The notes under the pieces were generated by a model. It saw only the letters and a program-made list of their open reading frames with translations. It was not told where the DNA came from and ran no database searches. This document shows positions 6,434-46,399 of a stretch of DNA of 64,000 bases, piece after piece; within the stretch, counting starts at the first letter, position 1; the number at the start of each line of letters is the position of its first letter. Both the position numbers and the translations under genes were made by a program. Location: contig OZ251226.1 in NCBI GenBank assembly GCA_965240325.2, positions 1,736,001 through 1,800,000 on the forward strand. Direction: 5' to 3'. The DNA is from Rebecca billardiae RCC1528. Lineage: Eukaryota; Protista; Haptophyta.

Positions 6434-8190
6434 ATGACCGCGTTCCGCGGTCCTTTTCCGTAGAACGAACGTAGTTCGGGGCCCGCGGTGGCGGTGCACC
6501 CTCCGTCGCAGTCGTCTATTGACAGACCAGCCAGTTGCATGCCCGTACAACTAGACTCCAGCGGCGCGCCGCTGCGCCCCGGCGCCGGCGCCGCGGGCGC
6601 GGGCCCATCGCAGCCGCCGGCGCGGCGCCCGGATTGTGTACAGGCGGATGCGACGAGGCGTGATCGACGAATGAGCGCGACTCCACGTGCACGCCAGGCC
6701 ACGTGGAGCTGACAGCCAGGGAACACTGTGCGGGGCCGCGGATTCGTTCGGGCCGCTGCTGCTGACCGCGCTGTCTGTCGTCACACCGCGCCGCGGCAGC
6801 GCCAGGAGTAGTCAGTAGATGATTTGCACTGGTCCGAGTAGGGTTCGACCAGCGCCTGCGCGACGGCCGACAGGCGGGCGCGAGGCGTGATCGACGCATG
6901 AGCGCAACTCTATCTACGCGGAGCTGACAGCCAGAGGGAGCACTGTGTGTGCCGAGGTGCGAGGGCACCGGTGATCGTTATTTCGCGCGCCGCGCGTGCA
7001 CTGCACGGGGTCACGGGGTGACACACCTCGGTCGGGCTCGGCACGCGTCGCAGAGGCACGGCCAGCTCTGGGGACGTCGCGCACCACCGTCGCCCGCGCC
7101 GCAGCTCGTCCTCCTAGGTCCGCCCGTCCAGCGCTGCAGACAGACTCGCCGGCGCGGGCCGAGAGTGAGTGCCGCAAAGCGGCTGCCAGCTGTTGGGCCG
7201 GGTGAGGAGGAGGGAGGGAGCTGGCCTGCGGGGCGCGTGGTGAAGTCGGTGATCAGTCGCGTCGCGCTCCCCCTGGCGATTGCGCCCTCGTCCTCCAGCA
7301 CGGTGCGGACCTTGCGAACGAAGTTGTAGATCGACCATTTGGGCACGTTGTACTTCACGGCCGCAGTGGGCACGTCCTGCTCGTGCCTCACGACTGAGAT
7401 GGCAGCAGCGATGCTCTGGAGCGTGCTCTTAGCCACCTTCTTCACTGCCCCGGATTCGAGCAGCACGTTCAATACGCGGCGAGCGCGGTCCTCGTCGGCG
7501 TCGCCAGCTGACGTGCTCGGCATCATGTCCACGTGAGCGCAAAAGTGGCCTCGAGCCTGCTCCTGGCTCGCCAGAGGGCAAAAGGCCAATAGCTACTCCC
7601 AATTCCCGAAGGCTGATGATGAATACGCACACGTGCGCCTGATGAATATCGATGATATTCTGCTCGACCCCGCCTAGCAGTCCATGAACCATATACATTA
7701 TAATGTATGAAAACGAAGCGGTGCAAATGATGTTCTCCAGTATAGTGGATACGACCCCGACGAAGCGATTTTATGCCTGCGTGAACCATACATATGAATA
7801 CGAAGCGCGGTGCAAATGTTCTCCAGTAGTGAATACGACCCCGACGAAGCCAATATATATCGGTTGGTTACTTCGCTGATCCCGTAAGGACGTGCAAAAA
7901 TAGCCTCAAAGAAGCTGACGCTTGTATTGGACTTGTAACCGTCCTACTTCACACAGAAGTGAACTCTCACGCCCGGCCGTCCACGATTGATTAGGGGAAT
8001 GTCGTGGACGCGGTTTTTTTCTCCGTGATGCATCTGTAGAGAGGGTCTCAAAATTCGAAACTCGGTCTCCGCCAGCCCTAAAAATCGGCCCCCGCGTCCC
8101 TTTTTCTTGATCAAAGATCTTTTTGAAACGTGGTTCCGGCCCGCTGGTGCGGGCTCCACGCTGCGCGCTCCGCCCTGCACCGCGGGCCAT
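6434..8190 (-). mobile_element. Family A element, copy A1 (1757 bp, Helentron/Helitron2-like non-autonomous)
   Basis: Ends ATGGCCCGCGGTGCAGGG (8190, minus strand) and GACCGCGGAACGCGGTCAT (6434). Nearly identical to 23227..25232. Confidence 0.9.
7011..7589 (-). pseudogene. Pipsqueak-type HTH coding fragment carried inside A1 (also 23804..24382 in A6)
   Basis: LQSIAAAISVVRHEQDVPTAAVKYNVPKWSIYNFVRK matches the HTH_psq pattern (AA..V.....AA.KY.VP..T/S). No catalytic domain follows. Confidence 0.55.
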
Positions 8191-8577
8191 CAGCTGTGAA
8201 GTGTGAGCAGACGCTGCGATCGGACCTGCGATCGATCGACTGGACGGACACCGTTGCGGGATCGGTCACTCGGTGGCACTGGTGACTGGACTGGTCAGCA
8301 TCACGGACAGTGGATGGATGTCGTCTGCTAAAGAATTTATTACCGCCATTGCATGATGAGCAGTCTCAGTAGAACCGTGTGACGATCTCGCCTGCCTGAG
8401 CTGTGTGCGTCTCTTATTCTTAGTAAACTGTAGAACTACGTTTACTACGCGGCGTCGGACTGCACCGTAGTCACACTCACAGTGCATCAGTGCAATGTGC
8501 TTACAGCTTAGTGTCTAGTGACGACTGTTGTGTCTGTTGAGTCAGTGCACTTCGTCAATCAATGACTTCAAATAGCT

Positions 8578-11500
8578 ATGACCGCGTGACTCCGCGGTCC
8601 TCTTCCGTCAGAACCAACGTAGTTGGGGGCCCGCGGTGCAGAGTCTGTCTGTGCCGGCCGTCTGACAGTCTGTGCGGTGTGCCACCCGCTCCGTCCGACC
8701 ACCACGGACACTCACACTGACACAGCCGCGGCGTCGCCCCGGAGTCGCATATCGGCCACTAACCTCGCCATCGTCGCGCGGACTCGCCGCTCGCAGATCA
8801 GCCTGTGGCTCTCGTGTCAGGCAGTCAGGCATCCGCCGTGCCCATCAGCGCCAGAGCTGGCTCTCAGTCACTGAGTGAGTGAGAGCCGCCGCTCACGGTC
8901 AGCGCGCAGTCCGAGCTCCGAGCTCGCGCGCGAAACGCCCGCCCATGCGCCAGTCAAGCCGTCGAGACTCGAGACAGCTCGGATGCGGCGGACGAGAGCA
9001 AAAAGGATGTGCGCGTGGTCCAGCTCGTGCTGCGACTCGGACTCGCCCAGTCTCGTCGCCCGCAGATCTGCGCGCGCTGCTTGCCGCGCCGCTGCATCAT
9101 GTGCAGCCAGAGGCTCCAGTCATTGTCAGCACGCCGCACGCGGATGAGCCATCACAGCTCGGCCATGGACGGCGCGAGCGAGGGCTTGGGCGAGCGAGAT
9201 GGCCGTGGTGGCTGCTCCACATCCCGACAAAACGTCCAAGACTACCCGCTCGCACCACGCCGACTGGATCAGGCGAAGGCTCCGCACTGCAGATCAGGCT
9301 CGGCGAGACGCGGCTGAACCGCGAGTTTACCGCGACGTCCTCGCGACCGCCCGCGCTTGAACATGCCGAGAGTTCAGCTGCGCGGCGTGCGGCGTGGCGC
9401 GCGCGGGCGCGCGCATGGATTCACGCGTTAGGATGCCCCGCGGTCTCCTCCTCGTACCGTCGCCGACTGCTCTCCGCGCGCGAGCGTCGACATCGATTCG
9501 TGTCCGCGGTCCGGTGCTCGGTTGGAAACCGCACTGACTGGGCCGAAGAGGGATCGGCAGGGCGGGGCGCGCGGGGTGAGCGGGCACGAAAGCGACGCTG
9601 ACGACCGTCGGGATACCCGCCGCAGCAGCGCGCACCTGCGCTGAGTCCGTCGGATTGAACGATCGTGCGCTGCCGCAGCGGGCCGCCGCTCGGCCTCCGT
9701 TCGCTTTCGTTCGGCTGTGCTGGCAGTGGCCGAGGCGGCGAGGCGACGACTCCAGAGCTCAGAAGGCCGTATCCAGTATTCATCAAGGGACGAGATAGTA
9801 TGAAGATTGCGTTGTGGTTGCGCGATCAACATTTGATCGATCATCAAACGTCGTCGCTCCTTGAATGCCGTTTTTATCGGTTGGCGGTTGGCGGCAATCT
9901 CATACTGCTTAAAATCGCGCTCGTAACGAAGACGAAAATAGCCTCGAAAGGGGCGGGCCGCACACGCCGCGCGCCGCGCCCCCTCCGGCTCCGACTATAC
10001 GGATAGCTGCGGCGGGTATTTTCAATCTCTCGCACTATTGGAGTTGGTTGGACGATTATGTCAACGGTCGTTCTTGGCATCTTGCAGCGGCGAGGCCATA
10101 TTATGGCCCGCGGTGCAGGGCGGAGCGCGCAGCGTGGAGCCCGCACCAGCGGGCCCGAACAACGTTTCAAAAAGATCTTTGATCAAGAAAAAAGGGACGG
10201 GGGACGATTTTCATGGCTGGAGGAGACCGAGTTTCGAATTTTGAGACCCTCTCTAACATGCATCACGGCCGAAAAAGGTCTGACGCGCCCACGGCAAGTT
10301 CATAGTAAAGCGTGGAGTGACGCCCGTCCAAAAAACTTCACGCCCTTTAGGATCCCTAACGTAACGAACCGTTACAAGCGATTTTTCCGGCCAATGAGAT
10401 TGCAGCAAGGTCCAAGGAGCGATGACGTATCTAGATAGAGATTGCCGCGAACCGATGTGACCATGTACGTCCCTTGAATCAGTTGAATCAACTATTCAAT
10501 CGCGCCGTGTCTGTATCAGGAGCCGACGAGGCAAGGGTCAGTAGCCGATGGGCCAACCTCGGCGAATCTCAATACTATCTGACGCGAACGGACTTGGTTG
10601 GGCGCGCGCGTGGCCCCGGGCGGCGGCCCACCAGAGGCGGCCCGCGTTTGGAGGCGAGCCACGGGCACGAGGCTCACTCTGAGCGACCGACGGGTGAGGA
10701 CGGCGATGGGCAGGTGCGCGCGGCGAATGGCGCCTGGAGCGCGCGGCTGCGGCGGGTCCCGACTGCCGTCGACATCGCGTTCGTCGTGCCCCCGCTCACT
10801 CCGCGCGCCCCCGCCGCCCCTGCCGCCCTGTCGATGCCTCGGCGCGGCCTTGCGCGGCCCCGGCGCGTCCGCGAGCCGGCGCCGCAGCCGCCGCCCTGTG
10901 TTCGGGCTCTCGCAAGCTCGGGGGCAGCGGCGCCTGATGCCGGACTGATCGATCTCTGAGCCTTCGACTTCACCACGCGCCGCCCTTGCCATGCCTTTCC
11001 GGGGTCTCCCAGAACTCTTCTTGATTGAGAGAGAGCAGGCGCGCCGACGATCCGAGTCCATCGTCGGTCGACTCTGAGCGAGGGCTACGCCTCGGAACTG
11101 AACGGTACTCTACGAGGAGGACGAGCTGCGCGGGCGACGGTGGTGCGTGACGTCCCCAGAGCTGGCCGTGCCTCTGCAACGCGTGCCGAGCCTGATCGAG
11201 GTGTGTCAGCTGCCCGTGCACGCGCGGCGAGTGCGCGAACCGGATCACCGGTGCCCTCGCACCTCGGCACCGTGCTCCCTCGGGCTGTCAGCTCCGCGTG
11301 GCCTGGCGTGCACGTAGAGTTGCGCTCATGCGTCGATCACGCCTCGCGCCCGCCTGTCGGCCGTCGCGCAGGCGCTGGTCGAACCCTACTCGGACCCTAC
11401 TCCTCCAGCCCTACTCCCGGGCGCTGCCGGCGCGGGGGGTGACCCCGGGGACAGCGGTCAGCAGCAGCGGCCCGAACGAATCCGCGGCCCCGCACCGTGC

Positions 11501-12068
11501 TCCCTGGCTGTCAGCTCCGCGTGGCCTGGTGTGCACGTGGAGTCGCGCTCATGCGTCGATCACGCCTCGTCGCATCCGCCTGTACACAATCGGCGCCGCG
11601 CCGGCGGCTGCAATGGGCCCGCCCGGCGCGGCGGGCGGCGGCGCGCCGCTGATGGAGTCTAGTTGTACGGGCATATGCAACTGGTCTGTCAATAGACGAC
11701 TGCGACGGAGGGTGCACCGCCACCGCGGGCCCTGAACTACGTTCGTTCTACGGAAAAAGGACCGCGGAACGCGGTCATTTTACTATGGTCACACTACATT
11801 AAGGAGAGTCTACCCACAATTACCCTGTCTGGCACACTTGGGCGTGGGTTTCGTTGATTCCTCTGTTCACTATTCAAGACGGCGGACGCGCCCTTTTTCG
11901 ACGAGGATGCACCTGTAAGGGAGTCTCAAAATTCGAAACTCGGTCTCCTCCAGCCCTGAAAATCGTCCCCCGTCCCTTTTTTCTTTGATCAAAGATCTTT
12001 TTGAAACGTGGTTCGGGCCCGCTGGTGCGGGCTCCACGCTGCGCGCTCCGCCCTGCACCGCGGGCCAT
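8578..12068 (-). mobile_element. Family A element, copy A2 (older; about 1.8 kb once nested A3 is removed)
   Basis: Degenerate hairpin end at 8578 (atgaccgcgtgactccgcggtcc) and a same-orientation 5' end finishing at 12068 (ctgcaccgcgggccat). Size without A3 matches the other copies. Pairing of these two ends is inferred. Confidence 0.7.
10103..11778 (+). mobile_element. Family A element, copy A3 (1676 bp), nested in A2
   Basis: Both conserved termini are intact. The last ~670 bp are homologous to A1 6434..7115, but the middle differs. Confidence 0.9.
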
Positions 12069-12365
12069 AATACTAGTTAACGGAGTCTTACGAGAGTAAC
12101 GATCAATAACGATGCCACTGACTACGTGTGACGAAGCCAGTGGCGACTACGACGACGGACTACGACAGAGAAACGTGGGCCGCCGATGTGCCTGACGGCA
12201 TACGTGGCCCGGGCCAGTGCTCACGGCACTGAGTCCCAGTCACGTGCCCTCAGTGACAGACACAGTGGGCGGCCTGGGCCGACTGCGAGACAAGTTGCAG
12301 CACGGGTCAGCAGACAGCAGCTTATAGAGCGGCTCCGGCCTCTGCAACAGAGGATCACAGAGGAC

Positions 12366-14147
12366 TCATTCGTCTTGGGGTGGCAAGTTGTCGAGGTCGA
12401 TGGGCTGCGCGACGAGCACGGACGCACAGGCGAGGGCGAGGTCGGTTCAGCGCGCACGCGCGGCGCGCCAGCCGCGCAGCGCGGCGCGCACCTTGCGCTC
12501 CTCCGGCGGGAGTGTCGACATGATCTGGTCGTAGATCTTGAGCACATCGGCGACGGAGGTCTCGAAGTGGGAGGTCGCGTCGAAGGAGGTGGAGATGAAG
12601 CAGCCGTCCTTGCTGAAGTCGTTCACCGGCTCGTACACGTTGTTCAGCAGCGCGAAGATCTTGTCCGGCTTGCCGAGCAGCTTGAGCGCGGGCGCGAGCT
12701 CCTTGACCGGCTCCTGCGTCTCGACGGTCGAGGAGACGATAACGATGTACTTGTCCTTGGGCGCGACGCAGTTGGTCTGCCCGAGGCAGGTGACGTAGAT
12801 GTCGTGTTTGCGGCCCACCTGGTTCTGCGGGATGATGATCTGGCACGAGTCCGAGTTGTTCGTGTTGGGCAGCGGGTGCGACATGATGCAGACCATCCTG
12901 ATCACCTGCCCTGTCTGCTTCACCTTGTTGTCGTTGAGGAAATACGAAGGGTCGCCGATCACCATCTTGCACTTGGCCGTCTCGCCCTGGCTCGTCACGC
13001 CGCACACGCGCCCACTCTCGTCGTACTCGATCTTATCCACCGGCTTGTTCAGCATGTACACGCCGCCGTGCACCGCGCTCAGCCTGCGAGTGCGCGCGCG
13101 CGAGAGAGAGCGCGCGCAGACCCATTGGGCTGCTGTGAGCCGGCCAGCTCCGTGCCGGCGCGCGCCGCTGCCCGGGTGGCGCCGCGCAGGCTCCGGCAGC
13201 CGCGCAGGCCGGGCCCGCCCCGCGCCCCCCCCGCTGCCACGCCATGCACGCACGCCGCGCGTGCCGCACCTCGAGAACGCCTGCGGGAGCTCGCCCAGCC
13301 CGTAGAGCGGGTAGATGTAAGGCGACTTGCCGTACTGTGCGAGTGAGGTCGAGTACAGCTGGCAGCGCTTCACGAGCTCGAGCGCGGGCTGCTGCAGGTA
13401 CGCGTCGTTGGCGAAGAGCGCGAGCGCGTGGCCCACGAAGTCGACCGTCTCCTCTGACAGCCCAAAGTCCTTGAACAGCTCGGCGGCCGTCATCTTGTGC
13501 AGATTCCGGTTCTTGTGCGACTCGGGCTTGTCGTCGTCATAGTCCTGGACGTACAAGAGGAACGAGCGGAACCGCCGCTTCTCGAAGAGGCCCATCAGCC
13601 CGGACTGCAGCGCCTCGGTCTCGGTGGCGGGCACCTTGTACACTTGCCCCTTCTTGTACACGAACGAGCCGTCGATCTGCTTGAACTCGAGGTAGTGCGT
13701 CGTCTTGGTGTACAGCAGCATGCGGACGAGCTTGCCTGCGCGCGCGCGCGGCCGCGGAGCACGAGCGCGCGCGCAGCACGTGAGGTGAGCGCGAGGGCAC
13801 GGCTGGCAGGAGCGATGCGTCCACGACCAGAGCTGCCTCCAGCGCGAGCCCCACCCGCCCCACTGCGCGCCCCGGCCGCACGGCGCCGGGCGCACACCTG
13901 ACGCCATGATAAACTTCGGGATCAGGTCGATGTTGTAGTCGCGCACCTTGCCGAACTCGGGCGGAGGCTCGGTGCCGTTCGCGTACTTCTCGAACATCTG
14001 GGTGAGGTTCAGAGACGCGCTCTCGCCGCCGTAGTAGCTGTTGCGGTCCATGTGCAGCACCTTCTTGCCCGCGACCGACATGAGCCCAGAGAGCAGCGTG
14101 TCCTTCAGGCCCGTGCCCAGCACAATCACGTCATATTCCTCGTCCAT
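12366..14147 (-). CDS. GDI1: Rab GDP-dissociation inhibitor, 4 exons (14147-13898, 13735-13270, 13083-12492, 12404-12366)
   Basis: [74 protein letters not shown]. GT-AG introns at 13736-13897, 13084-13269 and 12405-12491 restore the frame. Confidence 0.97.
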
Positions 14148-14330
14148 GCCCTGCGGGGGCGAGCGGCAGCGCGGCGCGCGTGTGAGCGGACGCTCGTGCG
14201 CACTGGTTGTGGGCAGGCCCGCGTGCTGCTGCGCCGCGAGGGCCGCGCTAGCGCGCGCCGCCGACCTCTGTTCTCCGCGGCGGCAGCCACCCTTGTCAAG
14301 CGCGATACCTTCCGGAGACCGGAGTCCAAA

Positions 14331-15504
14331 CAAGGGTAGTAGTAGTAAGGGTGCGCAACTCCGCTGGCGACAGCCGCGGAGGTCGGGAGGGCTCTGTTTG
14401 CCTCGGCGAGCGGTGCGAGCGGAGCGGAGCGAGTACTATCAGCGGCGGAGGGCGGCGAGGCCGCGCACGGCGTGAGGCGCGACGTCGGCCGAGTCGGTCC
14501 GCAGAGGATGCGCGGCGCTCGGCCCGCTGCGCAGCAGCAGTGCGCCTCACTTTGCCCCGAGCGCCGTCCTCCTCGTCGCCTCCTTCCCGCCTTGGAGCAG
14601 CACGCATGTGCGCGCCGCCACAATGAAGGCGGCACGGGCTCGCTCGGAAGACCGCGCGCGCGTGGCGCGCGACTTGGTCGGCTGCGCGCGCGCGCTGCCG
14701 CGGGGCAAGGTAGCGCCATCGAATGCGCGCGCCGTGCCCGCGCGAGAGCGTGTACGCGCACGTGGGTGCGAGCTCACACGCATGCCGAATGCTGCCTGCG
14801 CATCCGACTTGCCGACTGTCGTGAAGCTGGAAAAGACAGCGGCGTGAGTGTTGGTACCATCGATGCCGAGCCTTAGCTTCCACTTGCATTCGTGCTGAGA
14901 AGGAATACACAAGACTTGGCCTTCGTCCTGGCTTTCCAATGTCACTCAACGCCCTGCTAATCGACCCGAACAGTGCCGGCGTGAGGCACAGCGAACCATT
15001 TGTGAGAGCAAGCAGGCAAGCGAGCACTACGCTCATGAGATGTCCGTGAGCAAAGGCTCGCGCGGGCACGGCGCGCGCATTCGATGGCGCTACCTTGCCC
15101 CGCGGCAGCGCGCGCGCGCAGCCGACCAAGTCGCGCGCCACGCGCGCGCGGTCTTCCGAGCGAGCCCGTGCCGCCTTCATTGTGGCGGCGCGCACATGCG
15201 TGCTGCTCCAAGGCAGGAAGGAGGCGACGAGGAGGACGGCGCTCGGGGCAAAGTGAGGCGCACTGCTGCTGCGCAGCGGGCCGAGCGCCGCGCATCCTCT
15301 GCGGACCGACTCGGCCGACGTCGCGCCTCACGCCGTGCGCGGCCTCGCCGCCCTCCGCCGCTGATAGTACTCGCTCCGCTCCGCTCGCACCGCTCGCCGA
15401 GGCAAACAGAGCCCTCCCGACCTCCGCGGCTGTCGCCAGCGGAGTTGCGCACCCTTACTACCCTTGGCTGTCGCCAGCGGAGTTGCGCACCCTTACTACC
15501 CTTG
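14331..15504. mobile_element. Non-autonomous foldback DNA transposon with ~410-bp TIRs and a 7-bp TSD (P-superfamily-like)
   Basis: Inverted arms at 14331-14746 and 15057-15466, termini CAAGGG...CCCTTG. The right end carries a 38-bp tandem duplication. GTCCAAA is repeated at 14324-14330 and 15505-15511. Confidence 0.88.
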
Positions 15505-16813: not shown

Positions 16814-18717
16814 ATGGCCCGCGGTGCAGGGCGGAGCGCGTAGCGTGGAGCCCCGCCGGGGGCCCTCACTACGTTGTCAAAAAGATCTTTTGATCAAAGA
16901 AAAGGGGACGGGGGACGATTTTGAGGGCTTTGGAGGGTGAATTTTCGCTAATTTTCGAGGGGTACACCGTACATTGCTGTCTATCCGCAAGAAGCGATTG
17001 ACGAAATAGGCGCGCCCGGACGTGAGTCATAAGAAAGATCGAAGGCCGTCACATTGTCAGTAAACGAATCTGCGCCATTGTGGTAATGCCCGGGGCCGGA
17101 CTCCGCCCAGCACCAGCACCGGACAACAGTGATCCACTCCGGACTGGGCGGTCGGCGATCGTTCCCCGCGATGACCAGTGGGTCACCGCCTCGACCGCAG
17201 TCAAACGCGGGGGCGCGGGCGCGCGCGCACTTGTCGCGCAAGACAGATCAGAAATCCTGATTCCTGGACGCGCACGCGAACCGGCTCGGCATGCGGAACG
17301 CGTTGATGCGCTTGGGGACGCACGACATCGGGCCGTTCTGAAACGACACCGGGCGAAACTCTACCGCGACCGCGTGCACGCGCGGACCGCAGGCCGCGTG
17401 ACGACTGCGACACTGCGCGACGCGAAGGAGCAGGTGCTGGCGCCGCAGATGGCGGTGCGGGCGTTCTGCCCGAGCTGCAACAACCCGCTGCTCTCGGGCC
17501 AGGTGCATCAGCGCATCCAGGACCGCCGCTGCCACGTGCTAACCAAGGTGGTCAGGGCATGAGACACGCGACCGTGTGCGAGCAAGGCGTGCCAAGATGA
17601 TCGACACGGCGAAGCAGGTGGTGATCGAGGCGCTGAGCCTGATCATGGTGAGGCGCATCTTCTCGACCTGCCCGACGCGCAGACCACGCAGGCGTCGCTT
17701 CCGGGCGCGTGGGACTCGCGCACCAAGACGCTGTGGCGCGTGGACCCTGTCGGAGTCTGTGCGCGGCGCGCGCGCGCGCGTGCGCGCGCGACGGGCACGT
17801 GGCGCGCCGACCAGCCGTACGGCGCTGACTGTTGACGCACCTCGCGCATGCGCTACCCCGGTCGCGCCGCCGCCGCCGCCGCGCAGGCATGCTCTCGTAG
17901 GAGGAGACGGCGGAGCTGCGCGCACACATGGCCGCGCGCGGCTCTCGGTCGGACGCGGTCGGCGATCACGGGCGCGCTGCCGGCCCGGCGCGCCGCTGAA
18001 CGACGAGTAGGCCGCGCTGGAGGAGTACGTCCGCCGCCGCGCTCCGCCTGCGCGAGCAGCGCTCCGCCGCGCCCGACCCGCTGGCCGAGCAGCTGCGCAG
18101 CGACCGCGCCATCGCAGAGCAGCTGCAGCGCGAGGAGATGGCGGCACGCGCGGGCGGCGCGCCCGTGACGCTGCACTCGGCCGAGGTCGACGAGGACGCG
18201 CAGATGGCGCTGGCGCTGCTGCTCGTGTGCGAGGCGTGCGACCAGGACACACGCGCGCTGCGCAACGCTGAGCGCCGGATCCGTTTTCGGCGCCGTAAGG
18301 TACGCAAGGCGCTGGCAGCGGAGCGCACCGGGGCGGCGGCGCATGCGCGCACGCGGCGCGCTCGCGGTCGATGCGCGGCAACTCCAACCGCCTCGGCAAG
18401 CGCAAGCAGCGGGACGAGGGCGGCGCCGCGGCGGCGGGTGCGATGAACAAATCGGACGAGCGCGCCAAGTCCCGACGCATCGCCAACGCCGCCAAGCTGT
18501 TCGAGGACATGGACGGCGACGAGATCGCGGCCGCGGCGCACGCGGCGGGCAAGCTGGACTGCCAACTTGCGTGACGCGTCTCGCAGACTGCCACTGCCAC
18601 TGGGCCTGGCCCATTATAAATCTTCATACGACATTGAGCAGCCGAGCAGCCGACGGAGGGTGCACCGCGGGCCCCTAACTGCGTTGGTTCTACGGAAGGA
18701 CCGCGGAACGCGGTCAT
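16814..18717 (+). mobile_element. Family A element, copy A5 (1904 bp)
   Basis: Both conserved termini. The 5' ~250 bp are shared with A7. Internal sequence is unique, with fragmentary coding-like frames (e.g. FCPSCNNPL). Confidence 0.9.
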
Positions 18718-20574: not shown

Positions 20575-23208
20575 CACAGTGCCGGAAAACTGCTCAGGGT
20601 GACGTTTTAAGTTGTCCGCACCACTAGTCGAATCATCGGACAATTCTGAAGCGGTGCGCCTAAATTCGGCGCACCATAGGCGCGTCGAATCGTGGCACAG
20701 ACCTTGGTAGCAGGCCACACCTGAGCGCGCTGCGCGCGCCGACGCGCGCTCGGCGCGGGCAAAAAATCATGCGCCGTTGGCATTACGCAGCCCCGCGCAG
20801 CGCTGTGCTCGAGCTCGGCGGCGGCGAAAGCGGGCGGGCGCACACGGCGGTGCGCGTGCGCGCTGCTCCGAGCGCAGCTGCGGCCACCCCGGCGGCATAC
20901 CGCCGGTCGAGGGCACGAAAACCGATTTTTCGGGAAAATGCAGAGCAGCGGCGCCCGAGCGCGCCCGAGCTCGTCGCAGCACAGTCTCCTGGTGGCTGCG
21001 CCCCGTGAAGCCACGCCACGCGGGGCGCTGGCGTGCGCGTGGCCTGCGCCCACCGTGCGCTGCCCGATCATGGCCGTCGACCGCTCCGAGCGCCTCACCA
21101 CGCGTGCTCGAGCCCACCGATACTGACGCCCGAGCACGGTGCCGGCAGCGCTCGCAGGTGGGCGTCGGAGAAAACACGCCGGCCGAACGAGCTTGAAGCG
21201 TCCGCCGCGATGCCAACGGCAGCGGACGACGTGCGCGCCACCTCGGCGCCAGTCGCCCAGCCCTTGCGCGGCGGTGCGGGCTCGCTCGTTCGCCGCCATC
21301 AGCTGCGCGCGCGCAGCCCGATCACTGCCCGCTGGTTCTGTTGTCGAGCAGCTGCGGCCTGCCACGCGCACTGCCGGACATTGAGCCACAGCGCGAGCAC
21401 GCGCCTCGTCTGGCACGCGCGAGCACTCAGCATCGTGCGTGGCCACCATGACGCGCCCATCTGCGCCAGCAGCGATGAGCACGCCGCCGTTCAGCTCGCA
21501 TCGGGCTCGCTCGCGACGCAGCAACGCGCGGCCGTAGCGGCAGCAGCGGCGCCGTCGAGCACGCGCAGCAAACAAATATGCAGCGCGGGCGAGTCGACGG
21601 TCTGGAAAATGCGCGATCACGCCACAGCAGGCTGGCAGAGCCCGCCCGAGCTGCAGCATGCCGTAGGTGCTGCCCCAAGCTCTCGACTGCCCGTAAGCGG
21701 CGGCATGTGCGGCGGCGCCGGCGGCGGCCATGCTGCCACGCCGTTGCGCGCTGCGGGGCGCCGTCGGCACCTCCGTGGTGAAGCGCACAGAGCTCGAGCC
21801 CACGGGGGCTGGCGACCGTCAAACCGACACCCCATGACGCGGGGCTGCGTGCGCCAGCTGCGCGCACTCCGTGGGCCCACCTAGCCCGCTCGAGCAGCTC
21901 GCCTTGGGTGCGCGCAGCGGCTCGAGCACACTGGTATGGGACGCCTGCCTGCGGTGCCGCCGAGCACATGCGGCCGACGGTCACTCAGCACGGGCGACTC
22001 GACGGCGGCGAGCAGGCGCGACGGCCTCGCCGCGCCGCGGAAAAGCCTGCCCGGGCTGCAGCACGCCGTAGGAGCAGCCCAGCGCCCTCCTCCGCCCTCC
22101 AGCTTCAGCGCGCGCAGCAGGCCCGGCGGCGGCCATGCTGGCGTGCCCAAGCATGAAGATGGGCGCGGCCGGCCGCGCCGTCGCAAAGCGCGCAGAACTC
22201 GAGCTCGGGGGGGCGGACGGCCGCCAAACTGGCGCGGCAGGACGTGGCACTGCGTGCGCCAGCTGCGCGCACCCGCTGCGCCCGCGTGGCCCGTGCGAGC
22301 GCCGCGCCTCGAGCACACGCAGCTGCTCGACACAGCCACGGCAGTGTGGCTTGTGCGCGTGCACGTGATCAGTCTCAGCTCTGAGGCGCGCGCTCAGGAG
22401 GGCTGCGGCCGGGCCGAGCGCGATCTGCGCGGACGGTACAGCCTGGCGGCTCATGCCAGCCAGCCCAAAGCCCGCTCCGCCATCCGCGTCATGGCGCTCC
22501 AGCCTCTCGCGTGCTGCGCTGCAGCCGCGCTCGGCAAAGACGTCGCCCAGCCCGCCTTGCACGCGGCTGAGCAGTGGCAGCCAGGCGAAGCGTCGTCGCG
22601 GGCGAGGCTGCGCTGGGTGATGCGGCTCGGGTCGGTGGGCAAGTCGCACCCCGCCGTCGGTCGCCTCCACGCCTCAGGCTCGCTCGAGGTCAAAGACAAC
22701 TGCGCGGCGCGGCGTTTGCGCGGGCGGGCCGCGGGCGTGGCGGGGTGTACGCGTGCAATGTCACAGCCTCCCATGCACAATTTCAGGAGGGTGAGACGCA
22801 CCGCCAGCGGCACCCGCACACAATCCCACCCTGCGCGAGCCACCTGCCGTGTCGACTGAAGCATCAGGCTCGGGCGCAACCGCGGGCGGCGCATGCAAGA
22901 AGCTCGCGAAACGCACCGCGCGCGCCGTGAGGGCGAAAGGAGAGCACCCGTCAGGGCGGCGAGGAACTTGCCCAGCGCCACGCGGAAGACGACCCCAGCC
23001 CGCGTCGACGCATAGTCGGGCCCGCGAGCAGCCTCGTCGGTCTTCGCCGAGTAGATCGCGCCGCGAGCCGAGGCACCGCTCGTTTGAGGCTCCGTCCGCC
23101 GCGAAGTCGCGGCTTCCACCCGAGTTCCACTGTCCGGCCGAGACCGGATTCGCTGACTCGAGCTGCGGACCGTCCGAAGCGTCACGGAAAATTCCAATCC
23201 TGCACTGT
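20575..23208 (+). mobile_element. Family B element, copy B1 (2.63 kb, CACAGTG terminus, non-autonomous)
   Basis: Near-identical inverted copy of 42679..45311. Starts CACAGTGC and ends GCACTGT (terminal G absent). Flanked by (TA)n. Confidence 0.9.
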
Positions 23209-23226: not shown

Positions 23227-25347
<2,121 letters not shown>

Positions 25348-36866: not shown

Positions 36867-39800
36867 CTAGAGGCCAACCGCAACGAACGCCGCCCACGGG
36901 ATGGTGCCGAGCACCTCGCCCTCTTCCTCCGACACCGCGCTCGGCCCGGGCCCGCGGCGCTCGCGCAGCATCTCGAGCATCGCCGCGCGCAGCGCCTCCG
37001 CCGGATCGCGCAGCGGGCCGTCCGCACTGGGCCCGACGTCTTCCGACGGCGGCGTATCCTCGCGCCGCACGGCCGCCGCGCCGCACGGCCCGCAGAGCCG
37101 CCCAGCCGGGGGCGCCGCGTCCGCCTCGGCCTCCTCGCCGCCGCGCGCGCGCCCATCCCCGCCGCCGCTGGCGCGCGCCGCGTGGCCGAGGGGGGTCGGG
37201 GAGAAGAGCCGCCTGTACACGCGCTCGAGCAGCTCGCGCCGCGCGTCCGCCGGGAGCGGCCAGAGCGGCGCGAGCACCGTGCGCGCGCCCGCGCCCAGGA
37301 AGGCGCGCGAGATGTCCACGTGCCCGTCGCCTCCCGCCTCGTCCCCGACGGCGTCGATGCTGCCGAGGACAACCAGCCGCGCGCGCACCGGCACCGCCGA
37401 TGCCAGCAGCTCCTCGAGCCAGAGCGCGCCGCGCTCGGCGCTCTCCGCGGCGAGGTAGAGCCCGTCGGGCGAGCACGACGCGGCGACGTGGAGGAGGTCG
37501 GCGCTGCCGACGAGCTGCGCCACGGCCTGCTTGCTCGCCGCCGCGCCCGCCAGCTCGCGCACGTCGTGTAGCTGCGCGGCGCGAAGCTCGCGCACGACGG
37601 CGCTCGCCTCGGCGCGCGCGCCGCTCGGCTGCGCGACGCGCACGCCCACGCGGTCGCCCACCTTGATCCCGCCGCACAGCTCGATGCGCTCGGCGAGCAC
37701 GAGCCTGTGCGGCTCGGTACCCGCCGTGCTTGGCGGCGGCATGCGCGGCACTTCTGAGCGCTCCGCACCCTTCTCCACCCACGCGGCACGATCGGACGTG
37801 CGCACGAGCTCGGACAGCTGTGCCGCGTGCGCGGGCGAGCGCACCGTGACGGCCAGCGCGTACGCGTGCGTGTCCGGCGAGGTGAGCACGCCGGCCTTGA
37901 GCTCCTCGCCGACCGGCGGCGGGGCGTCGAGGTCCTCGGTCGCGTGCGCCCTCTCCGCGTCAAGCACCGTTCCCATCGAGGGCGCGACGCGCACCGAGCA
38001 CCGCTCGATCAGGTGGCGGCCGCGGTCGTCCAGCAGCGCCGCAAAGGGCAGCGCGTGGAGCGCGCCGTCTGGGACGATCAGCAGCCGGCTGTGCGCGCGC
38101 AGCGCGGCTTCGAACGGCTCGAGCAGCAGGCGGTACCCCTTGCGCAGCAGCCGCGCGAGGGAGCCATCCTCGCCTACACCCGCGCCAGAGCCGGCGCGGC
38201 TGGGGGCGCCGACGCCGCCCGCACTCGCCGCCGCGCCGCCCGCCGCCGCCGCGCCGCCCGCCGAATCAGCCGGCGCGCCCGGCGCGTGCTCTGCCGAGTA
38301 CCGGCTTGGGTCGAGGCCGACGCGGCCGGCGCCGAGCTCGGAGGGCGGCCACGCGCTCGCGCGCGGGCGCGGCCACGCGCGCGCGCCGAGCGCCACGCGC
38401 GTGCGCTCGACCAGCCCGTGGAGCGTGCCCTCCACCTCCGGCAGCTCGATCTCGGCAAAGACGGTCGACGCGCCCTCGGCAGTGGGCAGGAGCGCCCAGC
38501 CCAGAAGGCGCGCGGACGAGAGCTGCGAGTAGTAGATGAGTACGAGGTCGTGCCGCGCGGCGTATGCGCGCATGCCACCCCACGGCAGCCACGACGCGCG
38601 CGAGCGGCGCTGCGGGGTGCCAAACGGCGACGCCGACGCGCTCAGGGTGCGCCCCTCCGCCGTGTCGCGCCTGGGCCGCGCGGGCGAGTCCGAGTCTGCG
38701 CCCGAGCCCGACACGCGGACCGCAGCGGCGGACTCCCTCGGCGCCGCGGCCTCGGCCTCGGCCTCGGCCTGCGCGCTGACCTGCCGCGCCGCCCTGCGGT
38801 GCATTGCCTGTCGCAGCAGCGCGCGCGCGCGCGCGCGCTCGGCCTCGTCCAGCGCGACGAGCGTCTCGCCGCTCGCAACGTGTGCGGCCTGCAGCCCTCG
38901 AAGCGCCGCGTCTGCCGCGCGCCCGTCCGCGCGCCACTGCAGCAGCGCGCCGGCCGTCGGCGCCGCGCGCGCCTGCAGCTCGTCGTAGATGCGGACGGCG
39001 CGCGCGTAGTGCCGCACCGCGGCGGCGTGCTCGCGCAGCCCGACCAGGGCGGCGCCGAGGCAGCACAGCGCGTGCGCCTCGCCCCGCCGCTCCTCGAGCG
39101 CGCCGAACAGCGCCAGCGCGCCCTCCGCGTGCTCGCGCGCGCGCGTGTACCGCCCGAGCTCCTCATAGTGCGTACCCAGATTACCCAACACCGCGGCCTC
39201 GAGCGCGCGCTCGCCGAGCTCGCGCGCGAGCGGCAGCGCGCGGAGGTAGTGCTCGATCGCCGCCTCGGGCTCGCCGAGCGCGGCCTTGAGCGCGCCCATC
39301 CGCGCGCGGCACGTCGCCTCGAGCTCCGGCGTGCCGAGCTCGTGCGCCGCGCGCAGCGCTCGCTCCTGCAGCTGCGCGGCGCGTCCGAACTCGCCGAGGC
39401 CGGCGTTGGCGGCGCCGAGGCTAACGAGACAGGTCGCCTCTGCGAGCGGGTCGTTGAGCTCGCGCGCGATCGCCAGGGCCTGCGCGAGCTGCTCGGTCGC
39501 GCGCTCGTGCTGCCCGAGCGCGCTGTACACCGCGCCGAGCGCGCCGAGCACCTCGCCGGCCTCGAGCGCGCTCGAGAGCAGCTCGGCCGTCGCGAGCGCC
39601 TGCCTGTACCGCACGAGCGCTAACTCGAGCTGGCCAAGCTGCACGTGGGCCTCGCCCAGCGCCTTGAGGTAGCGCAGCGCCTGCGCCGGGTCCTCCCGCT
39701 CGAGGCAGACGCGCAGCGCCGACTCGTACAGCTCGAGCGCGCGCGCGTGCTGCCCCACGCCCGCGTGCGCGTCGCCCAAGTCCCCGAGCAGACCCGCCGC

Positions 39801-40966
39801 GTGCGAGTGTGACTCCTCCGTGAGACCCTCGTCGCGCGCGGTGCGCCGCTCGCGGTAGATGTCGAGCGCGCGGACGTAGTGCGCCATGGCCTGCTCGTAC
39901 TCGTCGCGGTTGTAGTGCACGTTCCCGATGTTCCCCAGCGCCGCGCACACGGCGTCCTGGTCGCCCAGCTCGCGCGCGATCGCCATGGCCTGCTCGTGGT
40001 GCGAAATCGCGCCGTGTGATTGGCCGAGCGACTCGAGCGTGCCGCCGATGCTGGTGAGGAGCGAGCCCTCGAGGTCGCGCAGGCCGAGCTCGCGGCTGAG
40101 CGCGAGCGCCTGCTTGTAGTGCTCCATCGCCTGCTCGTGCTGCTCGAGCTCCCCGTACGCGTCGCCCAGGTGGCCGTGCGTCGTCGCCTGCAGCCGCCGG
40201 TTGTCTGCCTTCACGCTCAGCTCCAGCAGCGCGCTCAGGTGGCCGATCGCGCGCTGGTACTGGCCGAGGCCCATGTACGCCGCGGCGAGGCCCCCGAGCA
40301 CGCCGCTCTCGAACACGCGCGCCTGCTCGGGGTCTGCCACCTGCCGCCCGGCGAACTGCGCGCGCCGGCCGAGGCCCAGACGCGGACGGGTGCGCGCGCC
40401 GACGGCCCAGCCGCGCGGAGCGTGAGCGAATCGCGCCCGCACGGCACGGCGCGAGCGGCGCGGCGCTGGGCGCGGGCGCGCACCATCAGGGCCTTGAACG
40501 CGCCAATGGCATCGTCATACCGCCCCTGCTCGATCAAATAGTCGCCGGCCATCAGCGCCTGCTCCGCCTGCTCGAGCCGGCGCGCGCCGGTGAAGAGCTT
40601 CTCGAGAGCCATGCGCAGCCGCTCCGCGCTCTTGGCGTGCGTCGAGTCGAGCTCGAGGGCCGCCTTGGCCGCGGCCGCAGCGTCTTCCCAGCGCTGCAGC
40701 CGGAGCAGGCACTGCGCCTTGTTCGAGAGCACGCTGACGCGCAGCTCGACCTCGGGCGTCCCGGGAAGCACATACGGGACGGGAAGCAGCGCGAGCGCCT
40801 GGTCGTACGCGGCCAGCGCGTCCTCGAGCTCGCCGGCGGCGAATGCCTGATTCCCATGCTCCTTGTGCGCGAGCGCGCCGTCCAGGTCGACGGGCGACCG
40901 AGCGGACTCCACCACGTCCGATGCGCCGCCAGCGCCTGCGCCGGGCTGCGGCTGCGTGTTGCCCAT
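36867..40966 (-). CDS. TPR-array + CHAT domain protein (TTC28-like); intron 40341-40483
   Basis: N-terminal TPRs (HKEHGNQAF, LSNKAQCLL), many LG.IG..Y...G...A repeats, and CHAT motifs YRLLLEP, LLIVPDGALHALPFAAL, RAFLGAGA...LWP, WAAF. Confidence 0.9.
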
Positions 40967-41793
40967 CCTGCTGCCGCCGGCTCGGACGTCTGCTCAAGTT
41001 TCATTCGCGCGCGTGATTCACACATCATTGTCATCATACTGTACGTATTGTCATCATCATCAATCTGTTTCGCCGGGGGCAAGAACGTGGCCGCCTTGGT
41101 GGCAGTCGGCATTGATGGCCAAGTCGTGGGACTCGTTGATGAACGATGCCGGCCGTCGCCCGTCCAGCATGCAATCATGGCTCCACGCCGACACATGGCT
41201 AGCTACCTGTCCTCAGTGCATTGAGCTAGTAATTAACAGCTAACCAGCTGCGCACACGTGGTTGCGTGGGAGCCTGGACCTGTGCCGCGGTTCTTCCCGA
41301 CGGCTGCTGCATTCATCATCAGCAGAGCATTAATCATCAGTTCTGCTGACTAGCTTAGTGACTGTGTCTGTCGGCTGGAGCCTGGTACTCTCCGCCATCG
41401 CACTCGCTTCACGCGAGTGCGATGGTGGCTGTGCCCGCCGAGGTACGATGGCGGCGCAGTCCGGAGGAGAGTACCAGACATGAGACAGGTCTGTCGCAGT
41501 GATGACGACAGGTGATAATGCGATGTCTTTGACTTTGTGCAGTGGTTGGCGTCAATTGTTTCAGGTCGGAGTCGGTCTGCAGAGAGGGTTGGTTGTAGTG
41601 CCTGAGCCGCGAGTGTGCACGCAAATAATGGCGCACGGCCGCCCCGAAAGGTCTGAGCGTGAGCGAAAGCAGGGGGGGGGCACGTGCTCCGCAAATCAAA
41701 AAGATAATCGCGCGCAGGATTTAGGGTATTTAGGTGGATTTAGGTAATAAAACTGCTGATGCGATTGAGTCCATCTATGACAGTGCGCTGATT

Positions 41794-44700
41794 ATGGCCC
41801 GCGGTGCAGGGCGGAGCGCGTAGCGTGGAGCCCCGCCGGGGGCCCTCACTACGTTGTCAAAAAGATCTTTTGATCAAAGAAAAGGGGACGGGGGACGATT
41901 TTGAGGGCTGTTGGAGGGTGAGTTTTCGACTTTTTGAGGGGGGGTATGCTGTCTATCACAGCTTAAAAGGCCGCGCCCGCTGCAATTCTTGTATCTACTA
42001 TGGACGGACGTGGGATCAGATACCCCGGGGGTGAAGATCGAAGGCCGCTGGCCGTCACTTTGTCAGTAAAGTTTAGTCATCGTGTCATCGACGCTATTGA
42101 AAACTTGGTCGCCGGTCCAAGGGCCGTATTGTTTTGACAAAGTGCATGTGCATGGGTCATATACTACGACTGTTTCAAACTGCATGTCGGCGTACCGAGC
42201 GCGCTGTTTGCCGGTTTGCATTATTTTGCGCACGCGGGGGTCATATTGAAAAAAACCGTAGTAAACTGTAATCACGCCTTAACCAAGTGTGCACGTTAAA
42301 ACATGGTAAATGGTAGAATATCGGGTTGAAGAATACTAACGACGAAGCTTTGCGCTCGCGTGGCTCGAGCGCGAGATGGATGAACCTCCTTTGCCATAAT
42401 ATGAAAGAAAAACGGGTTACCCGCCCGCCAGCGTCTCGCGACGAGGACGGGTGCCCAAGCGGCAAGCGCGCACATCATGATCATCGCCGTCGGCGGGCCC
42501 ATCTTCGGCCGGCTCGAGCTGATGCACATCACGACGCTCAAGCAGGCGCTGTCCGTACCGACGTTGGCGCGCCTCCAGCGGATGGTCGACAAAGCACCCG
42601 TGGGCGAAGGAGGACCACAATCATGGCCGAGTCATCGGAGACGTCGCTGACCTCGCGGCTTCAAACAATCAAACATCACACAGTGCAGGATTGGAATTTT
42701 CCGTGACGCTTCGGACGGTCCGCAGCTCGAGTCAGCGAATCCGGTCTCGGCCGGACAGTGGAACTCGGGTGGAAGCCGCGACTTCGCGGCGGACGGAGCC
42801 TCAAACGAGCGGTGCCTCGGCTCGCGGCGCGATCTACTCGGCGAAGACCGACGAGGCTGCTCGCGGGCCCGACTATGCGTCGACGCGGGCTGGGGTCGTC
42901 TTCCGCGTGGCGCTGGGCAAGTTCCTCGCCGCCCTGACGGGTGCTCTCCTTTCGCCCTCACGGCGCGCGCGGTGCGTTTCGCGAGCTTCTTGCATGCACC
43001 GCCCGCGGTTGCGCCCGAGCCTGATGCTTCAGTCGACACGGCAGGTGGCTCGCGCAGGGTGGGATTGTGTGCGGGTGCCGCTGGCGGTGCGTCTCACCCT
43101 CCTGAAATTGTGTGGGAGGCTGTGACATTGCACGCGTACACCCCGCCACGCCCGCGGCCCGCCCGCGCAAACGCCGCGCCGCGCAGTTGTCTTTGACCTC
43201 GAGCGAGCCTGAGGCGTGGAGGCGACCGACGGCGGGGTGCGACTTGCCCACCGACCCGAGCCGCATCACCCAGCGCAGCCTCGCCCGCGACGACGCTTCG
43301 CCTGGCTGCCACTGCTCAGCCGCGTGCAAGGCGGGCTGGGCGACGTCTTTGCCGAGCGCGGCTGCAGCGCAGCACGCGAGAGGCTGGAGCGCCATGACGC
43401 GGATGGCGGAGCGGGCTTTGGGCTGGCTGGCATGAGCCGCCAGGCTGTACCGTCCGCGCAGATCGCGCTCGGCCCGGCCGCAGCCCTCCTGAGCGCGCGC
43501 CTCAGAGCTGAGACTGATCACGTGCACGCGCACAAGCCACACTGCCGTGGCTGTGTCGAGCAGCTGCGTGTGCTCGAGGCGCGGCGCTCGCACGGGCCAC
43601 GCGGGCGCAGCGGGTGCGCGTAGCTGGCGCACGCAGTGCCACGTCCTGCCGCGCCAGTTTGGCGGCCGTCCGCCCCCCCGAGCTCGAGTTCTGCGCGCTT
43701 TGCGACGGCGCGGCCGGCCGCGCCCATCTTCATGCTTGGGCACGCCAGCATGGCCGCCGCCGGGCCTGCTGCGCGCGCCGAAGCTGGAGGGCGGAGGAGG
43801 GCGCTGGGCTGCTCCTACGGCGTGCTGCAGCCCGGGCAGGCTTTTCCGCGGCGCGGCGAGGCCGTCGCGCCTGCTCGCCGCCGTCGAGTCGCCCGTGCTG
43901 AGTGACCGTCGGCCGCATGTGCTCGGCGGCACCGCAGGCAGGCGTCCCATACCAGTGTGCTCGAGCCGCTGCGCGCACCCAAGGCGAGCTGCTCGAGCGG
44001 GCTAGGTGGGCCCACGGAGTGCGCGCAGCTGGCGCACGCAGCCCCGCGTCATGGGGTGTCGGTTTGACGGTCGCCAGCCCCCGTGGGCTCGAGCTCTGTG
44101 CGCTTCACCACAGAGGTGCCGACGGCGCCCCGCGGCGCGCAACGGCGTGGCAGCATGGCCGCCGCCGGCGCCGCCGCACATGCCGCCGCTTACGGGCAGT
44201 CGAGAGCTTGGGGCAGCACCTACGGCATGCTGCAGCTCGGGCGGGCTCTGCCAGCCTGCTGTGGCGTGATCGCGCATTTTCCAGACCGTCGACTCGCCCG
44301 CGCTGCATATTTGTTTGCTGCGCGTGCTCGACGGCGCCGCTGCTGCCGCTACGGCCGCGCGTTGCTGCGTCGCGAGCGAGCCCGATGCGAGCTGAACGGC
44401 GGCGTGCTCATCGCTGCTGGCGCAGATGGGCGCGTCATGGTGGCCACGCACGATGCTGAGTGCTCGCGCGTGCCAGACGAGGCGCGTGCTCGCGCTGTGG
44501 CTCAATGTCCGGCAGTGCGCGTGGCAGGCCGCAGCTGCTCGACAACAGAACCAGCGGGCAGTGATCGGGCTGCGCGCGCGCAGCTGATGGCGGCGAACGA
44601 GCGAGCCCGCACCGCCGCGCAAGGGCTGGGCGACTGGCGCCGAGGTGGCGCGCACGTCGTCCGCTGCCGTTGGCATCGCGGCGGACGCTTCAAGCTCGTT

Positions 44701-46399
44701 CGGCCGGCGTGTTTTCTCCGACGCCCACCTGCGAGCGCTGCCGGCACCGTGCTCGGGCGTCAGTATCGGTGGGCTCGAGCACGCGTGGTGAGGCGCTCGG
44801 AGCGGTCGACGGCCATGATCGGGCAGCGCACGGTGGGCGCAGGCCACGCGCACGCCAGCGCCCCGCGTGGCGTGGCTTCACGGGGCGCAGCCACCAGGAG
44901 ACTGTGCTGCGACGAGCTCGGGCGCGCTCGGGCGCCGCTGCTCTGCATTTTCCCGAAAAATCGGTTTTCGTGCCCTCGACCGGCGGTATGCCGCCGGGGT
45001 GGCCGCAGCTGCGCTCGGAGCAGCGCGCACGGGCACCGCCGTGTGCGCCCGCCCGCTTTCGCCGCCGCCGAGCTCGAGCACAGCGCTGCGCGGGGCTGCG
45101 TAATGCCAACGGCGCATGATTTTTTGCCCGCGCCGAGCGCGCGTCGGCGCGCGCAGCGCGCTCAGGTGTGGCCTGCTACCAAGGTCTGTGCCACGATTCG
45201 ACGCGCCTATGGTGCGCCGAATTTAGGCGCACCGCTTCAGAATTGTCCGATGATTCGACTAGTGGTGCGGACAACTTAAAACGTCACCCTGAGCAGTTTT
45301 CCGGCACTGTGCAACCGCTCAGCCGGTTGCCACCGCGGCCGAGCGGTGCGCGCTCGCCACCGCGGCCGGCGCTGTGCACGGGCGTGCTGAGCCCGGGCCG
45401 CGTGAGCTCGCCCACCTCGCCCGGCGCGCACGCCGACGCCGCCACCGCGGCTCGGCGGCCGGACTCATCTCGGCCCGCAGCGCTTGCGTCCGGCCCCGCG
45501 GCGGCGCGCGCCGCCGTCGCCGCCGCGCAGGCCGTGCACTCGGTGGATGAGGAGACGGCCCTGCTGCGCGCGGAGCGCTGCGCGCCGCGCGCTGCTCCTG
45601 CTGCGGCGCGCAGTAGTCCGCTCGTCCGCCCCGCGGGCTCGCCACGGAGCCGACGAGCGCGATGACGACAATCGAATTGAGCACGAGTGCGCACGGAGGC
45701 GCTGGGCGCCGAGCTGGCGAAGCGCGGCGCCGAGCTCGACGCGCTGCGCGACGCGGCGACGGACGCGCTGGGCGCGCGCGGCGCCCTCGTCGCGACGCCC
45801 CGTGCAGCAGCTCGAGCAGCCAGCTGTGGAGTAGACGGCCGTCGACTCCCGGAGGGCGCCACCGCGCCGGGTGAGTGAGCACGCACGGGCTCCGCCTCGG
45901 TCGGAGGCTGGCTGGCCGCCGCCGTGGCTTCGAGGCCGACGCGGCGGAGGAGGCGGCGGGCGAGCACGGTGGCGCGGTGGAGCAGGCGCGCACGCGCGGC
46001 GGCAGGCGCGACCCGCCGCTCGCCTCGTTCCACCCCGAGCTCCGCTCGGTCTCGCCTCTCGGTGCGCGGCTGCGCAGCGCCGTGAGCGCAGGCTGGGGCC
46101 GCTGGGGGGTGGGGCCAGCAGAGTGGTGCGCGCTCTCGCTCTGCCGGCACGAGGCGCGCCGGCTGAGCGACCAGCGGCCCGTCGTCGAGCGCGTGGCGCA
46201 GCGCGAGCACCTCAAGGCAGGCTCGCCCTGCGCGCGCGCGCCGCTGCCCCGGCCGCCGTCCGTACTTCTTCGCGCGGGCTCGCGGCGACAGTCCTCATCG
46301 GCCCGCCATGTTGACCAGACTGAGACAGCAGCCGACGGAGGGTGCACCGCGGGCCCCTAACTACGTTGGTTCTACGGAAGGACCGCGGAACGCGGTCAT
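41794..46399 (+). mobile_element. Family A element, copy A7 (about 1.97 kb without nested B2)
   Basis: 5' ATGGCCCGCGGTGCAGGG at 41794 and 3' GACCGCGGAACGCGGTCAT ending at 46399. Confidence 0.9.
42679..45311 (-). mobile_element. Family B element, copy B2 (2633 bp), CACAGTGC...GCACTGTG with a 2-bp TSD (CA), nested in A7
   Basis: CA at 42677-78 and 45312-13. Near-identical reverse complement of B1. Confidence 0.92.

Follow-up and report, generated by a model that had tools for sequence, protein, structure and literature searches.

The closest described counterparts of the elements reported here are fungal Helitron2 transposons. FoHeli1 and FoHeli2 of Fusarium oxysporum, and their relatives in Chaetomium globosum, target the sequence TNAT and generate no target duplication (PMC5148889). 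Their 5' terminal sequence recurs, inverted, some tens of bases ahead of the 3' end (~38-51 bp in FoHeli1 and FoHeli2) and hairpins are found at both termini (PMC5148889). Insertion occurs between TNAT and T in Fusarium, or A in Chaetomium; derivatives that are non-autonomous are known too, as are joined ends (PMC5148889). Comparable traits mark a family of mobile elements with six copies in a 64-kb stretch of contig C8 (the window) of the alga Rebecca billardiae RCC1528, whose 72-Mb genome is held in 41 contigs. The family very probably consists of non-autonomous Helitron2-type (HLE2-like) rolling-circle transposons. We make this assignment because the terminal-to-subterminal inverted repeat, the hairpins at both ends, the lack of duplication and the TNAT| target match published families. 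It is a new family of a known kind, and not a new class of mobile element.

The algal ends are unrelated to those of the fungal elements (GGCCC...GGTCAT compared with TCAG...ATATTTT), an alga serves as host, and copies are far more numerous (~1,000). Fungal elements are 5-6 kb long with RepHel between the ends, whereas no complete autonomous copy was found in the alga. Helitron1 elements start with 5'-TC, finish with 3'-CTRR, carry a single hairpin 10-12 nt ahead of the 3' end, lack an inverted repeat and show A/T insertion. None of these end features is seen in the algal family, which has GGCCC...GGTCAT ends, a 13-nt inverted repeat and a hairpin 2 nt from the terminus. Likeness to Helitron1 elements, such as Helraiser (PDB 7LCC), lies instead in the absence of target duplication, apparent gene-fragment capture and an AT-containing target; the candidate RepHel described below also shares the HUH motif, two tyrosines and a Pif1-type helicase. 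The HINE and DINE-1 derivatives of animal Helentrons resemble the family in being short, protein-less and high-copy, with subterminal inverted repeats, a 3' stem-loop and variable interiors (PMC4067079). Conversely, Helentrons insert in TT, whereas the algal family has A after the insertion point; Helentron partners carry an AP-endonuclease domain, which is missing from the candidate RepHel; and the central microsatellite block typical of DINE-1 was not seen in the algal family (PMC4067079). An earlier note on the window had labelled the copies Helentron or Helitron2. The ends are indeed of Helitron2 type, but "Helentron" is too specific for a family whose candidate RepHel has no endonuclease domain. 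To that note we add proof, from a non-AT site, that nothing is duplicated, a genome-wide TNAT count, head-to-tail joints, an apparently decaying open reading frame (ORF) with part of a ubiquitin hydrolase (UCH) domain, and a candidate RepHel on contig C39.

The window is GC-rich (54-80% GC per 2 kb). The 5' motif ATGGCCCGCGGTGCA has six exact matches in it and three with two mismatches, making nine where 0.54 are expected. The three inexact matches are inverted subterminal copies at 3' ends. The hairpin GACCGCG-GAA-CGCGGTC is matched exactly five times (0.07 expected), and the sixth copy, A2, has the loop variant GAGTCA. In 6/6 copies, the 5' terminus is accompanied by its inverted copy in 3' subterminal position and by the 3' hairpin. 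The six pairs of ends proposed in the earlier note are all right, with motifs far above chance. The copies, and the features discussed with them, are as follows.

6434..8188, minus strand: copy A1, 1,755 bp, GGCCC...GGTCAT; contains an apparently decaying ORF with a possible helix-turn-helix (HTH) at ~7011-7589 (minus strand).
8578..12066, minus strand: copy A2, host of the nested copy A3; ~1.82 kb without the nested insert; 3' loop GAGTCA.
10105..11778, plus strand: copy A3, nested in A2; 1,674 bp; the empty site in paralogues is CATATTAT|TTTAC.
16816..18717, plus strand: copy A4, 1,902 bp; second end-subfamily, with compensated changes in the 5' hairpin.
23227..25230, minus strand: copy A5, 2,004 bp; 99.9% identical to A1 apart from a 249-bp internal tandem duplication; lies inside an (AT)n tract.
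25179..25230, minus strand: 5' terminal hairpin of A5, ~52 nt; terminal GGCCCGCGGTGC pairs with GCACCAGCGGGCC; -24.8 kcal/mol, z -3.8, 0/200 shuffles fold as well.
23227..23292, minus strand: 3' end module of A5, comprising the inverted copy of the 5' terminus CACCGCGGGCC, the small hairpin NAAC-TRC-GTTN, the terminal hairpin GACCGCG-GAA-CGCGGTC, and AT.
41796..46399, plus strand: copy A6, 4,604 bp; ~1.97 kb without a nested foreign element.
42680..45311, no strand assigned: unrelated foreign element nested in A6, 2.6 kb, with short inverted ends ACAGTGC...GCACTGT.

Pairwise BLAST comparisons showed that A1 and A5 differ by little more than the 249-bp duplication. Conversely, the sequence that A3 has in common with A1 is confined to 175 bp at the 5' end and ~700 bp at the 3' end (85%). 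For the remaining copies, the common sequence is limited to 120-185 bp on the 5' side and 60-75 bp on the 3' side. The palindromes AAAGATCTTT and TGATCA, already pointed out, are conserved within the 5' 100 bp. The nested inserts also proved real: A3 lies inside A2, the 2.6-kb foreign element lies inside A6, and their removal returns the hosts to ~1.82 and 1.97 kb. The family had been described as non-autonomous and recently active, with mosaic or swapped interiors. This description holds, since A1 and A5 are near-identical and the other interiors are unrelated or mosaic, and fail to align over their whole length.

An element begins with GGCCCGCGGTGCA and finishes with GACCGCG-GAA-CGCGGTCAT. 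In the six window copies, and likewise at 18 distinct 3' ends, a site ~50 nt ahead of the 3' end, TGCACCGCGGGCC, is the complement of the 13-nt 5' terminus GGCCCGCGGTGCA. Stem-loops follow at the 3' side, in agreement with the Helitron2/Helentron-type ends that had been proposed. A second complement to the same 13 nt lies ~40 nt downstream of them, so that the 5' end forms a long hairpin. This hairpin (~52 nt) has predicted energies of -22 to -25 kcal/mol (z -2.9 to -4.4), and 0/200 shuffles fold as well. Subfamilies differ in its inner stem (GCCCGC/GCGGGC, GCCCTC/GAGGGC or GCCCC/GGGGC), and the changes are compensated. Covariation is likewise seen in the small 3' hairpin (GAAC-TAC-GTTC compared with CAAC-TRC-GTTG). 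The terminal 3' hairpin, which ends 2 nt from the terminus, combines an invariant 7-bp stem with the loops GAA, GAGTCA or GAATTAA. Over 18 distinct ends of each kind, 5' and 3', the core motifs are invariant. Folding z-scores for the whole 3' 74 nt are modest (-1.1 to -1.8); support for the 3' structure thus comes from conservation and covariation, and not from energy.

Across the genome, exact matches number 986 for the 5' motif and 1,003 for the 3' hairpin. Control patterns, made by reading the motifs backwards, have zero matches. Ends were paired on contig C1 according to position and strand. For 58 of the 66 5' ends on C1, a 3' end was found on the same strand 1.2-5.4 kb downstream, so the ends pair as the earlier note had supposed. 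Several apparently orphan 3' ends pair with 5' ends that have a non-AT flank. Lengths on C1 cluster at ~1.2-1.3, 1.4, 1.6, 1.8-2.2 and 2.4-2.6 kb. Hence, the near-constant size seen in the window is a local property; the C1 pairing shows no single constrained size but subfamilies of 1.2 to 2.6 kb, and a size constraint is not supported. Four long copies (4.1-5.4 kb) were examined for an autonomous element. Their interiors are mutually unrelated and hold no transposase. Taking ~1,000 copies of ~1.8 kb, we estimate that the family makes up 2-3% of the genome. The 99.9% identity of A1 and A5 indicates recent activity. Separately, a very long compound microsatellite of the (AT)n/(GA)n/(TC)n type abuts a family 3' end at L053:~990-1770, giving rise to false open frames as long as 829 aa.

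Two independent families of empty sites define the element boundaries. The first is provided by 12 uninterrupted paralogues of the A2 host element (L029-L040), which read CATATT-AT-TTTAC (CATATTAT|TTTAC). The filled counterpart in the window, containing A3, reads CATATT-AT[GGCCC...GGTC]AT-TTTAC. Taken alone, this pair cannot separate a 2-bp AT duplication from precise insertion. Reads of run X1 yielded short contigs of repeats together with one contig that skips window positions 10103-11776, which correspond to A3; the latter possibly stems from a paralogue and is not used as evidence of polymorphism. The second family is a repeat found in L032, L025 and C39. Two empty paralogues read CTTGT|CCGATG, and the filled site in L032 reads CTTGT[GGCCC...GGTCAT]CCGATG. 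This fixes the element as GGCCC...GGTCAT, inserted without any duplication, and assigns the usual 5' AT to the target. It follows that the true start lies 2 bp further in than the 5' boundary given in the earlier note. The element makes no target-site duplication, fixed or otherwise; of the two ATs, the 5' one is part of the target and the 3' one part of the element. The dispersed repeat that supplies the second site occurs at L014:8050-8286, L025:~5119-5336, L032:1008-1238 and window 6245-6360. It ends ...CCACGTCGTTA and lies at AT-rich sites.

Flanking bases throughout the genome define the target. AT follows 963 of the 1,003 hairpins. At the 5' side, 58 further ends have TT, GT or CT directly before the element. 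For five C1 copies with a GT or TT 5' flank, the apparent partner 3' end, as paired by position and strand, is still GGTCAT. The base on the 5' side of the insertion point was T in every flank examined, and T also occupies position -4 in 943 of 986 copies (96%), giving a TNAT| target. The first base of the 3' flank was A in 24, and T in 3, of 28 sampled. Thus, the target (TNAT|A) is asymmetric and insertion is orientation-specific. The last four bases of the element itself, TCAT, also fit TNAT. There are 13 exact head-to-tail joints, GGTCAT|GGCCC, in the genome, compared with ~2 expected under random use of TNAT (a rough estimate). These could be insertions after the end of an existing element, or rolling-circle multimers. 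At L052:2944-2946, two family copies stand head to head with their GGCCC starts only ATTAT apart, and each copy reads the end of the other, plus TNAT, as its own target.

The interiors contain a recurrent ORF, related versions of which are carried by >140 matches. It contains a region judged by eye to be HTH-like, as well as the motif RLITDFTT; of a UCH domain it has the N-terminal half. The UCH half scores a Pfam E-value of 1e-5, just above the cut-off, and the HTH has no Pfam support. The C-terminal half of UCH is absent and the frame often continues through the element's 3' terminus. Divergence is mosaic: for the same two copies, the rate of synonymous change (dS) is 0.36 in the HTH part and 0.05 in the next part. 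The ratio of nonsynonymous to synonymous change (dN/dS) is 0.77 in the HTH part and 0.51 in the next part, from few changes. Since this gives no clear sign of purifying selection, the ORF is treated as a decaying fragment. We read it as a captured fragment or relic undergoing decay, with recombination between subfamilies. According to HELIANO, UCH domains occur almost only in HLE2 elements (PMC11417382). Hence, the UCH half may be a lead toward HLE2. Cargo ORFs had zero matches to the RepHel loci by tblastn, and zero matches to the UCH domains of RepHel relatives by blastp. An OTU-like motif noted by eye in L046 was rejected, having no Pfam support.

Helitron_like_N occurs at just five loci in the genome. 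At one, C39:338580-346355, there is an intact ORF of 2,591 aa with Rep and Pif1 domains. Its HUH motif (HVH), YxxxY and Walker A/B motifs align to Helraiser; the N-terminal 1,300 aa match no Pfam family. A family 3' end (120 bp, then ATA) lies 8.8 kb downstream on the same strand and is 92% identical over the 120 bp to copies of 1.2-1.3 kb in L005/L006. We consider the C39 RepHel the best candidate partner of the family, the link being unproven. The C39 copy may have lost its 5' part, in which case it would act solely in trans, or it may neighbour the 3' end by chance. The nearest database relatives of the protein are metagenome proteins with 33-48% identity, the closest of which (P0001) is on a 6-kb contig. 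Among the 30 nearest full-length relatives, DUF6570 is found in 5, OTU in 5 and UCH in 2. HELIANO links DUF6570 and UCH to HLE2, and finds OTU in both groups (PMC11417382). Looking up the exact C39 protein in public assemblies returned no record. Some 1-3 kb past the stop codon, at C39:~347340-349460 (L016:~340-2460), are about six tandem units with a 417-bp period.

Several observations weigh against this partnership, or against the HLE2 assignment itself. In the 31 kb upstream of the C39 RepHel there is no family 5' end, as judged by searches for exact matches, matches with 1-3 mismatches, BLAST hits at word size 7, and a variant complementary to C39's own 3' inverted repeat. No copy with both family ends was found to encode RepHel. 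An unrelated 3' end on the same strand would be met within 10 kb with ~7% chance at this copy density (a rough estimate). The C39 RepHel lacks DUF6570, a proposed HLE2 marker; a DUF6570 search of the whole genome gave no match, with a control that was uninformative. It scores 81 bits against Helraiser (HLE1), which is not lower than the ~72 bits obtained with Helentron-like proteins. Just one family of empty sites, CTTGT|CCGATG, directly displays a non-AT target. Finally, the base after the insertion point is A, and not the T usual for HLE2. The general HLE2 rule is insertion between T and T (PMC11417382); published Helitron2 families have both TNAT|T and TNAT|A targets (PMC5148889). By this comparison, TNAT|A appears as a known variant of the T/T rule.

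Some of these points invite a different view, namely that the family and the candidate RepHel form a deep Helitron-like lineage of their own in haptophyte-type algae. The enzyme would follow a rule like that of IS608 and cut after TNAT in three places: the left flank, the TCAT with which the element itself finishes at its 3' side, and the target. The ~1,000 protein-less copies would then be driven by one immobile gene without a 5' end. The view arises because the C39 RepHel has neither DUF6570 nor an endonuclease domain (there is no PF03372 match in it, or in the scanned 2,829-aa part of the C33-type RepHel described below), has an unmatched N-terminus of 1,300 aa, and is about equidistant from HLE1 and HLE2. 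We think this unlikely. In the literature, we found no paper on both Helitrons and Pavlovales or Diacronema, and one published genome paper of the Pavlovales/Diacronema group does not mention transposable elements.

The involvement of an HUH enzyme other than a Helitron RepHel is improbable. Such an enzyme would mobilise a single strand by "peel and paste" under the IS200/IS605 rule, where the target tetranucleotide is also the cleavage site at one element end. The IS200/IS605 elements (IS608) do have asymmetric, hairpin-bearing subterminal ends, cause no duplication, and insert in one orientation 3' of a tetranucleotide resembling the cleavage site at one element end. Hairpins at both ends, a TNAT target that matches the 3' terminal TCAT, and the lack of a RepHel between any complete pair of ends would all fit. 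However, IS200/IS605 elements are bacterial and use a single-tyrosine TnpA with no helicase, so that the resemblance is one of logic only. We know of no Y1 transposase that mobilises eukaryotic nuclear elements, and no search for one was made in this genome. Furthermore, on C39 a family 3' end has an intact RepHel upstream of it, and the same end design is documented for Helitron2 elements that do encode RepHel (PMC5148889).

The earlier note had suggested, from AT at both ends, a different HUH or recombinase system. Neither is needed, since the empty sites lack a duplication, the 5' AT being target and the 3' AT element. A circle-forming element that uses a tyrosine (Crypton-like) or serine recombinase, with an AT core for crossover in both the circle junction and the target, would turn the single AT of the first empty site into an AT at each junction, and the 13 precise head-to-tail joints do resemble a circle junction. 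We nevertheless give this model very little credence: GT, TT or CT on the left with AT on the right does not suit a matched crossover core, no copy examined contains a recombinase ORF, and the combination of inverted repeat, hairpins and TNAT target is that of published Helitron2 families (PMC5148889). Hardly credible at all is a cut-and-paste DDE family (PIF/Harbinger, ISL2EU, Spy-like or a Pack-type derivative) with a 2-bp AT duplication, which would explain the AT at both ends of most copies and the single AT in the empty A2 paralogues, but is refuted by the same non-AT left flanks that disfavour a matched core (CTTGT|CCGATG has no AT and its filled form has GT left and AT right; GGTCAT is apparently retained at the 3' partner of five of the TT, GT or CT ends, on C1), and is at odds with a target that lacks a mirror-image A to the T at -4, with strongly asymmetric ends whose 3'-side inverted repeat sits ~50 nt inside, and with the absence of a DDE ORF from the long copies examined.

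Returning to Helitron2-type transposition, a plausible series of events can be outlined. RepHel, combining an HUH-Y2 nuclease and a Pif1-type helicase, would be supplied in trans. It would nick one strand after the T of TNAT, both at the left flank and at the element's 3' terminus, and peel that strand off, with the hairpins serving as start and stop signals. The strand ends would then be joined and the strand inserted after a TNAT target. The varied interiors may result from read-through, template switching, recombination between subfamilies and nested insertions. They are probably decaying gene fragments and not functional cargo.

The family leaves the known working of such elements unchanged. 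It does offer a clean natural data set of Helitron2 type, in which near-identical copies number in the hundreds, empty sites are unambiguous, the TNAT target is sharp and the end structures show compensated changes, together with a single candidate RepHel gene that is directly testable. The copies could serve as a source of insertion polymorphisms. For annotation of the alga, gene-like ORFs in the interiors could be miscalled as genes.

The remaining Helitron_like_N loci belong to a second RepHel family.

C7:~281000, C13:~616000, C23:~65000 and C33:~783000: second RepHel family (L010-L013, L017-L028); three near-identical copies (99.8-99.95%) and a fourth at ~93-95%.

These copies have open frames of 2,865 to 3,640 aa without stops. 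Their ends are 5' ACGCACAACACAC... and 3' ...CTGCCTCAAC. No DUF6570 was found, and no endonuclease domain in a PF03372 scan of the 2,829-aa part of the C33-type protein. We considered the C7, C13, C23 and C33 RepHel copies as direct partners of the family and rejected them: the ends differ and no family motif lies within 15 kb.

Two other types of repeat were noted in the window. The 2.6-kb element with ACAGTGC...GCACTGT ends at 42680-45311 has a 99.7% identical copy at 20575-23208, which adjoins A5 in the (AT)n tract. Related pieces were found in L041 and L044. At window 14342-15461 is a foldback-type element of 1,120 bp, in which arms of 405 bp, 100% complementary, enclose a centre of 310 bp; copies related to it occur in C39 and inside the long copy L043.

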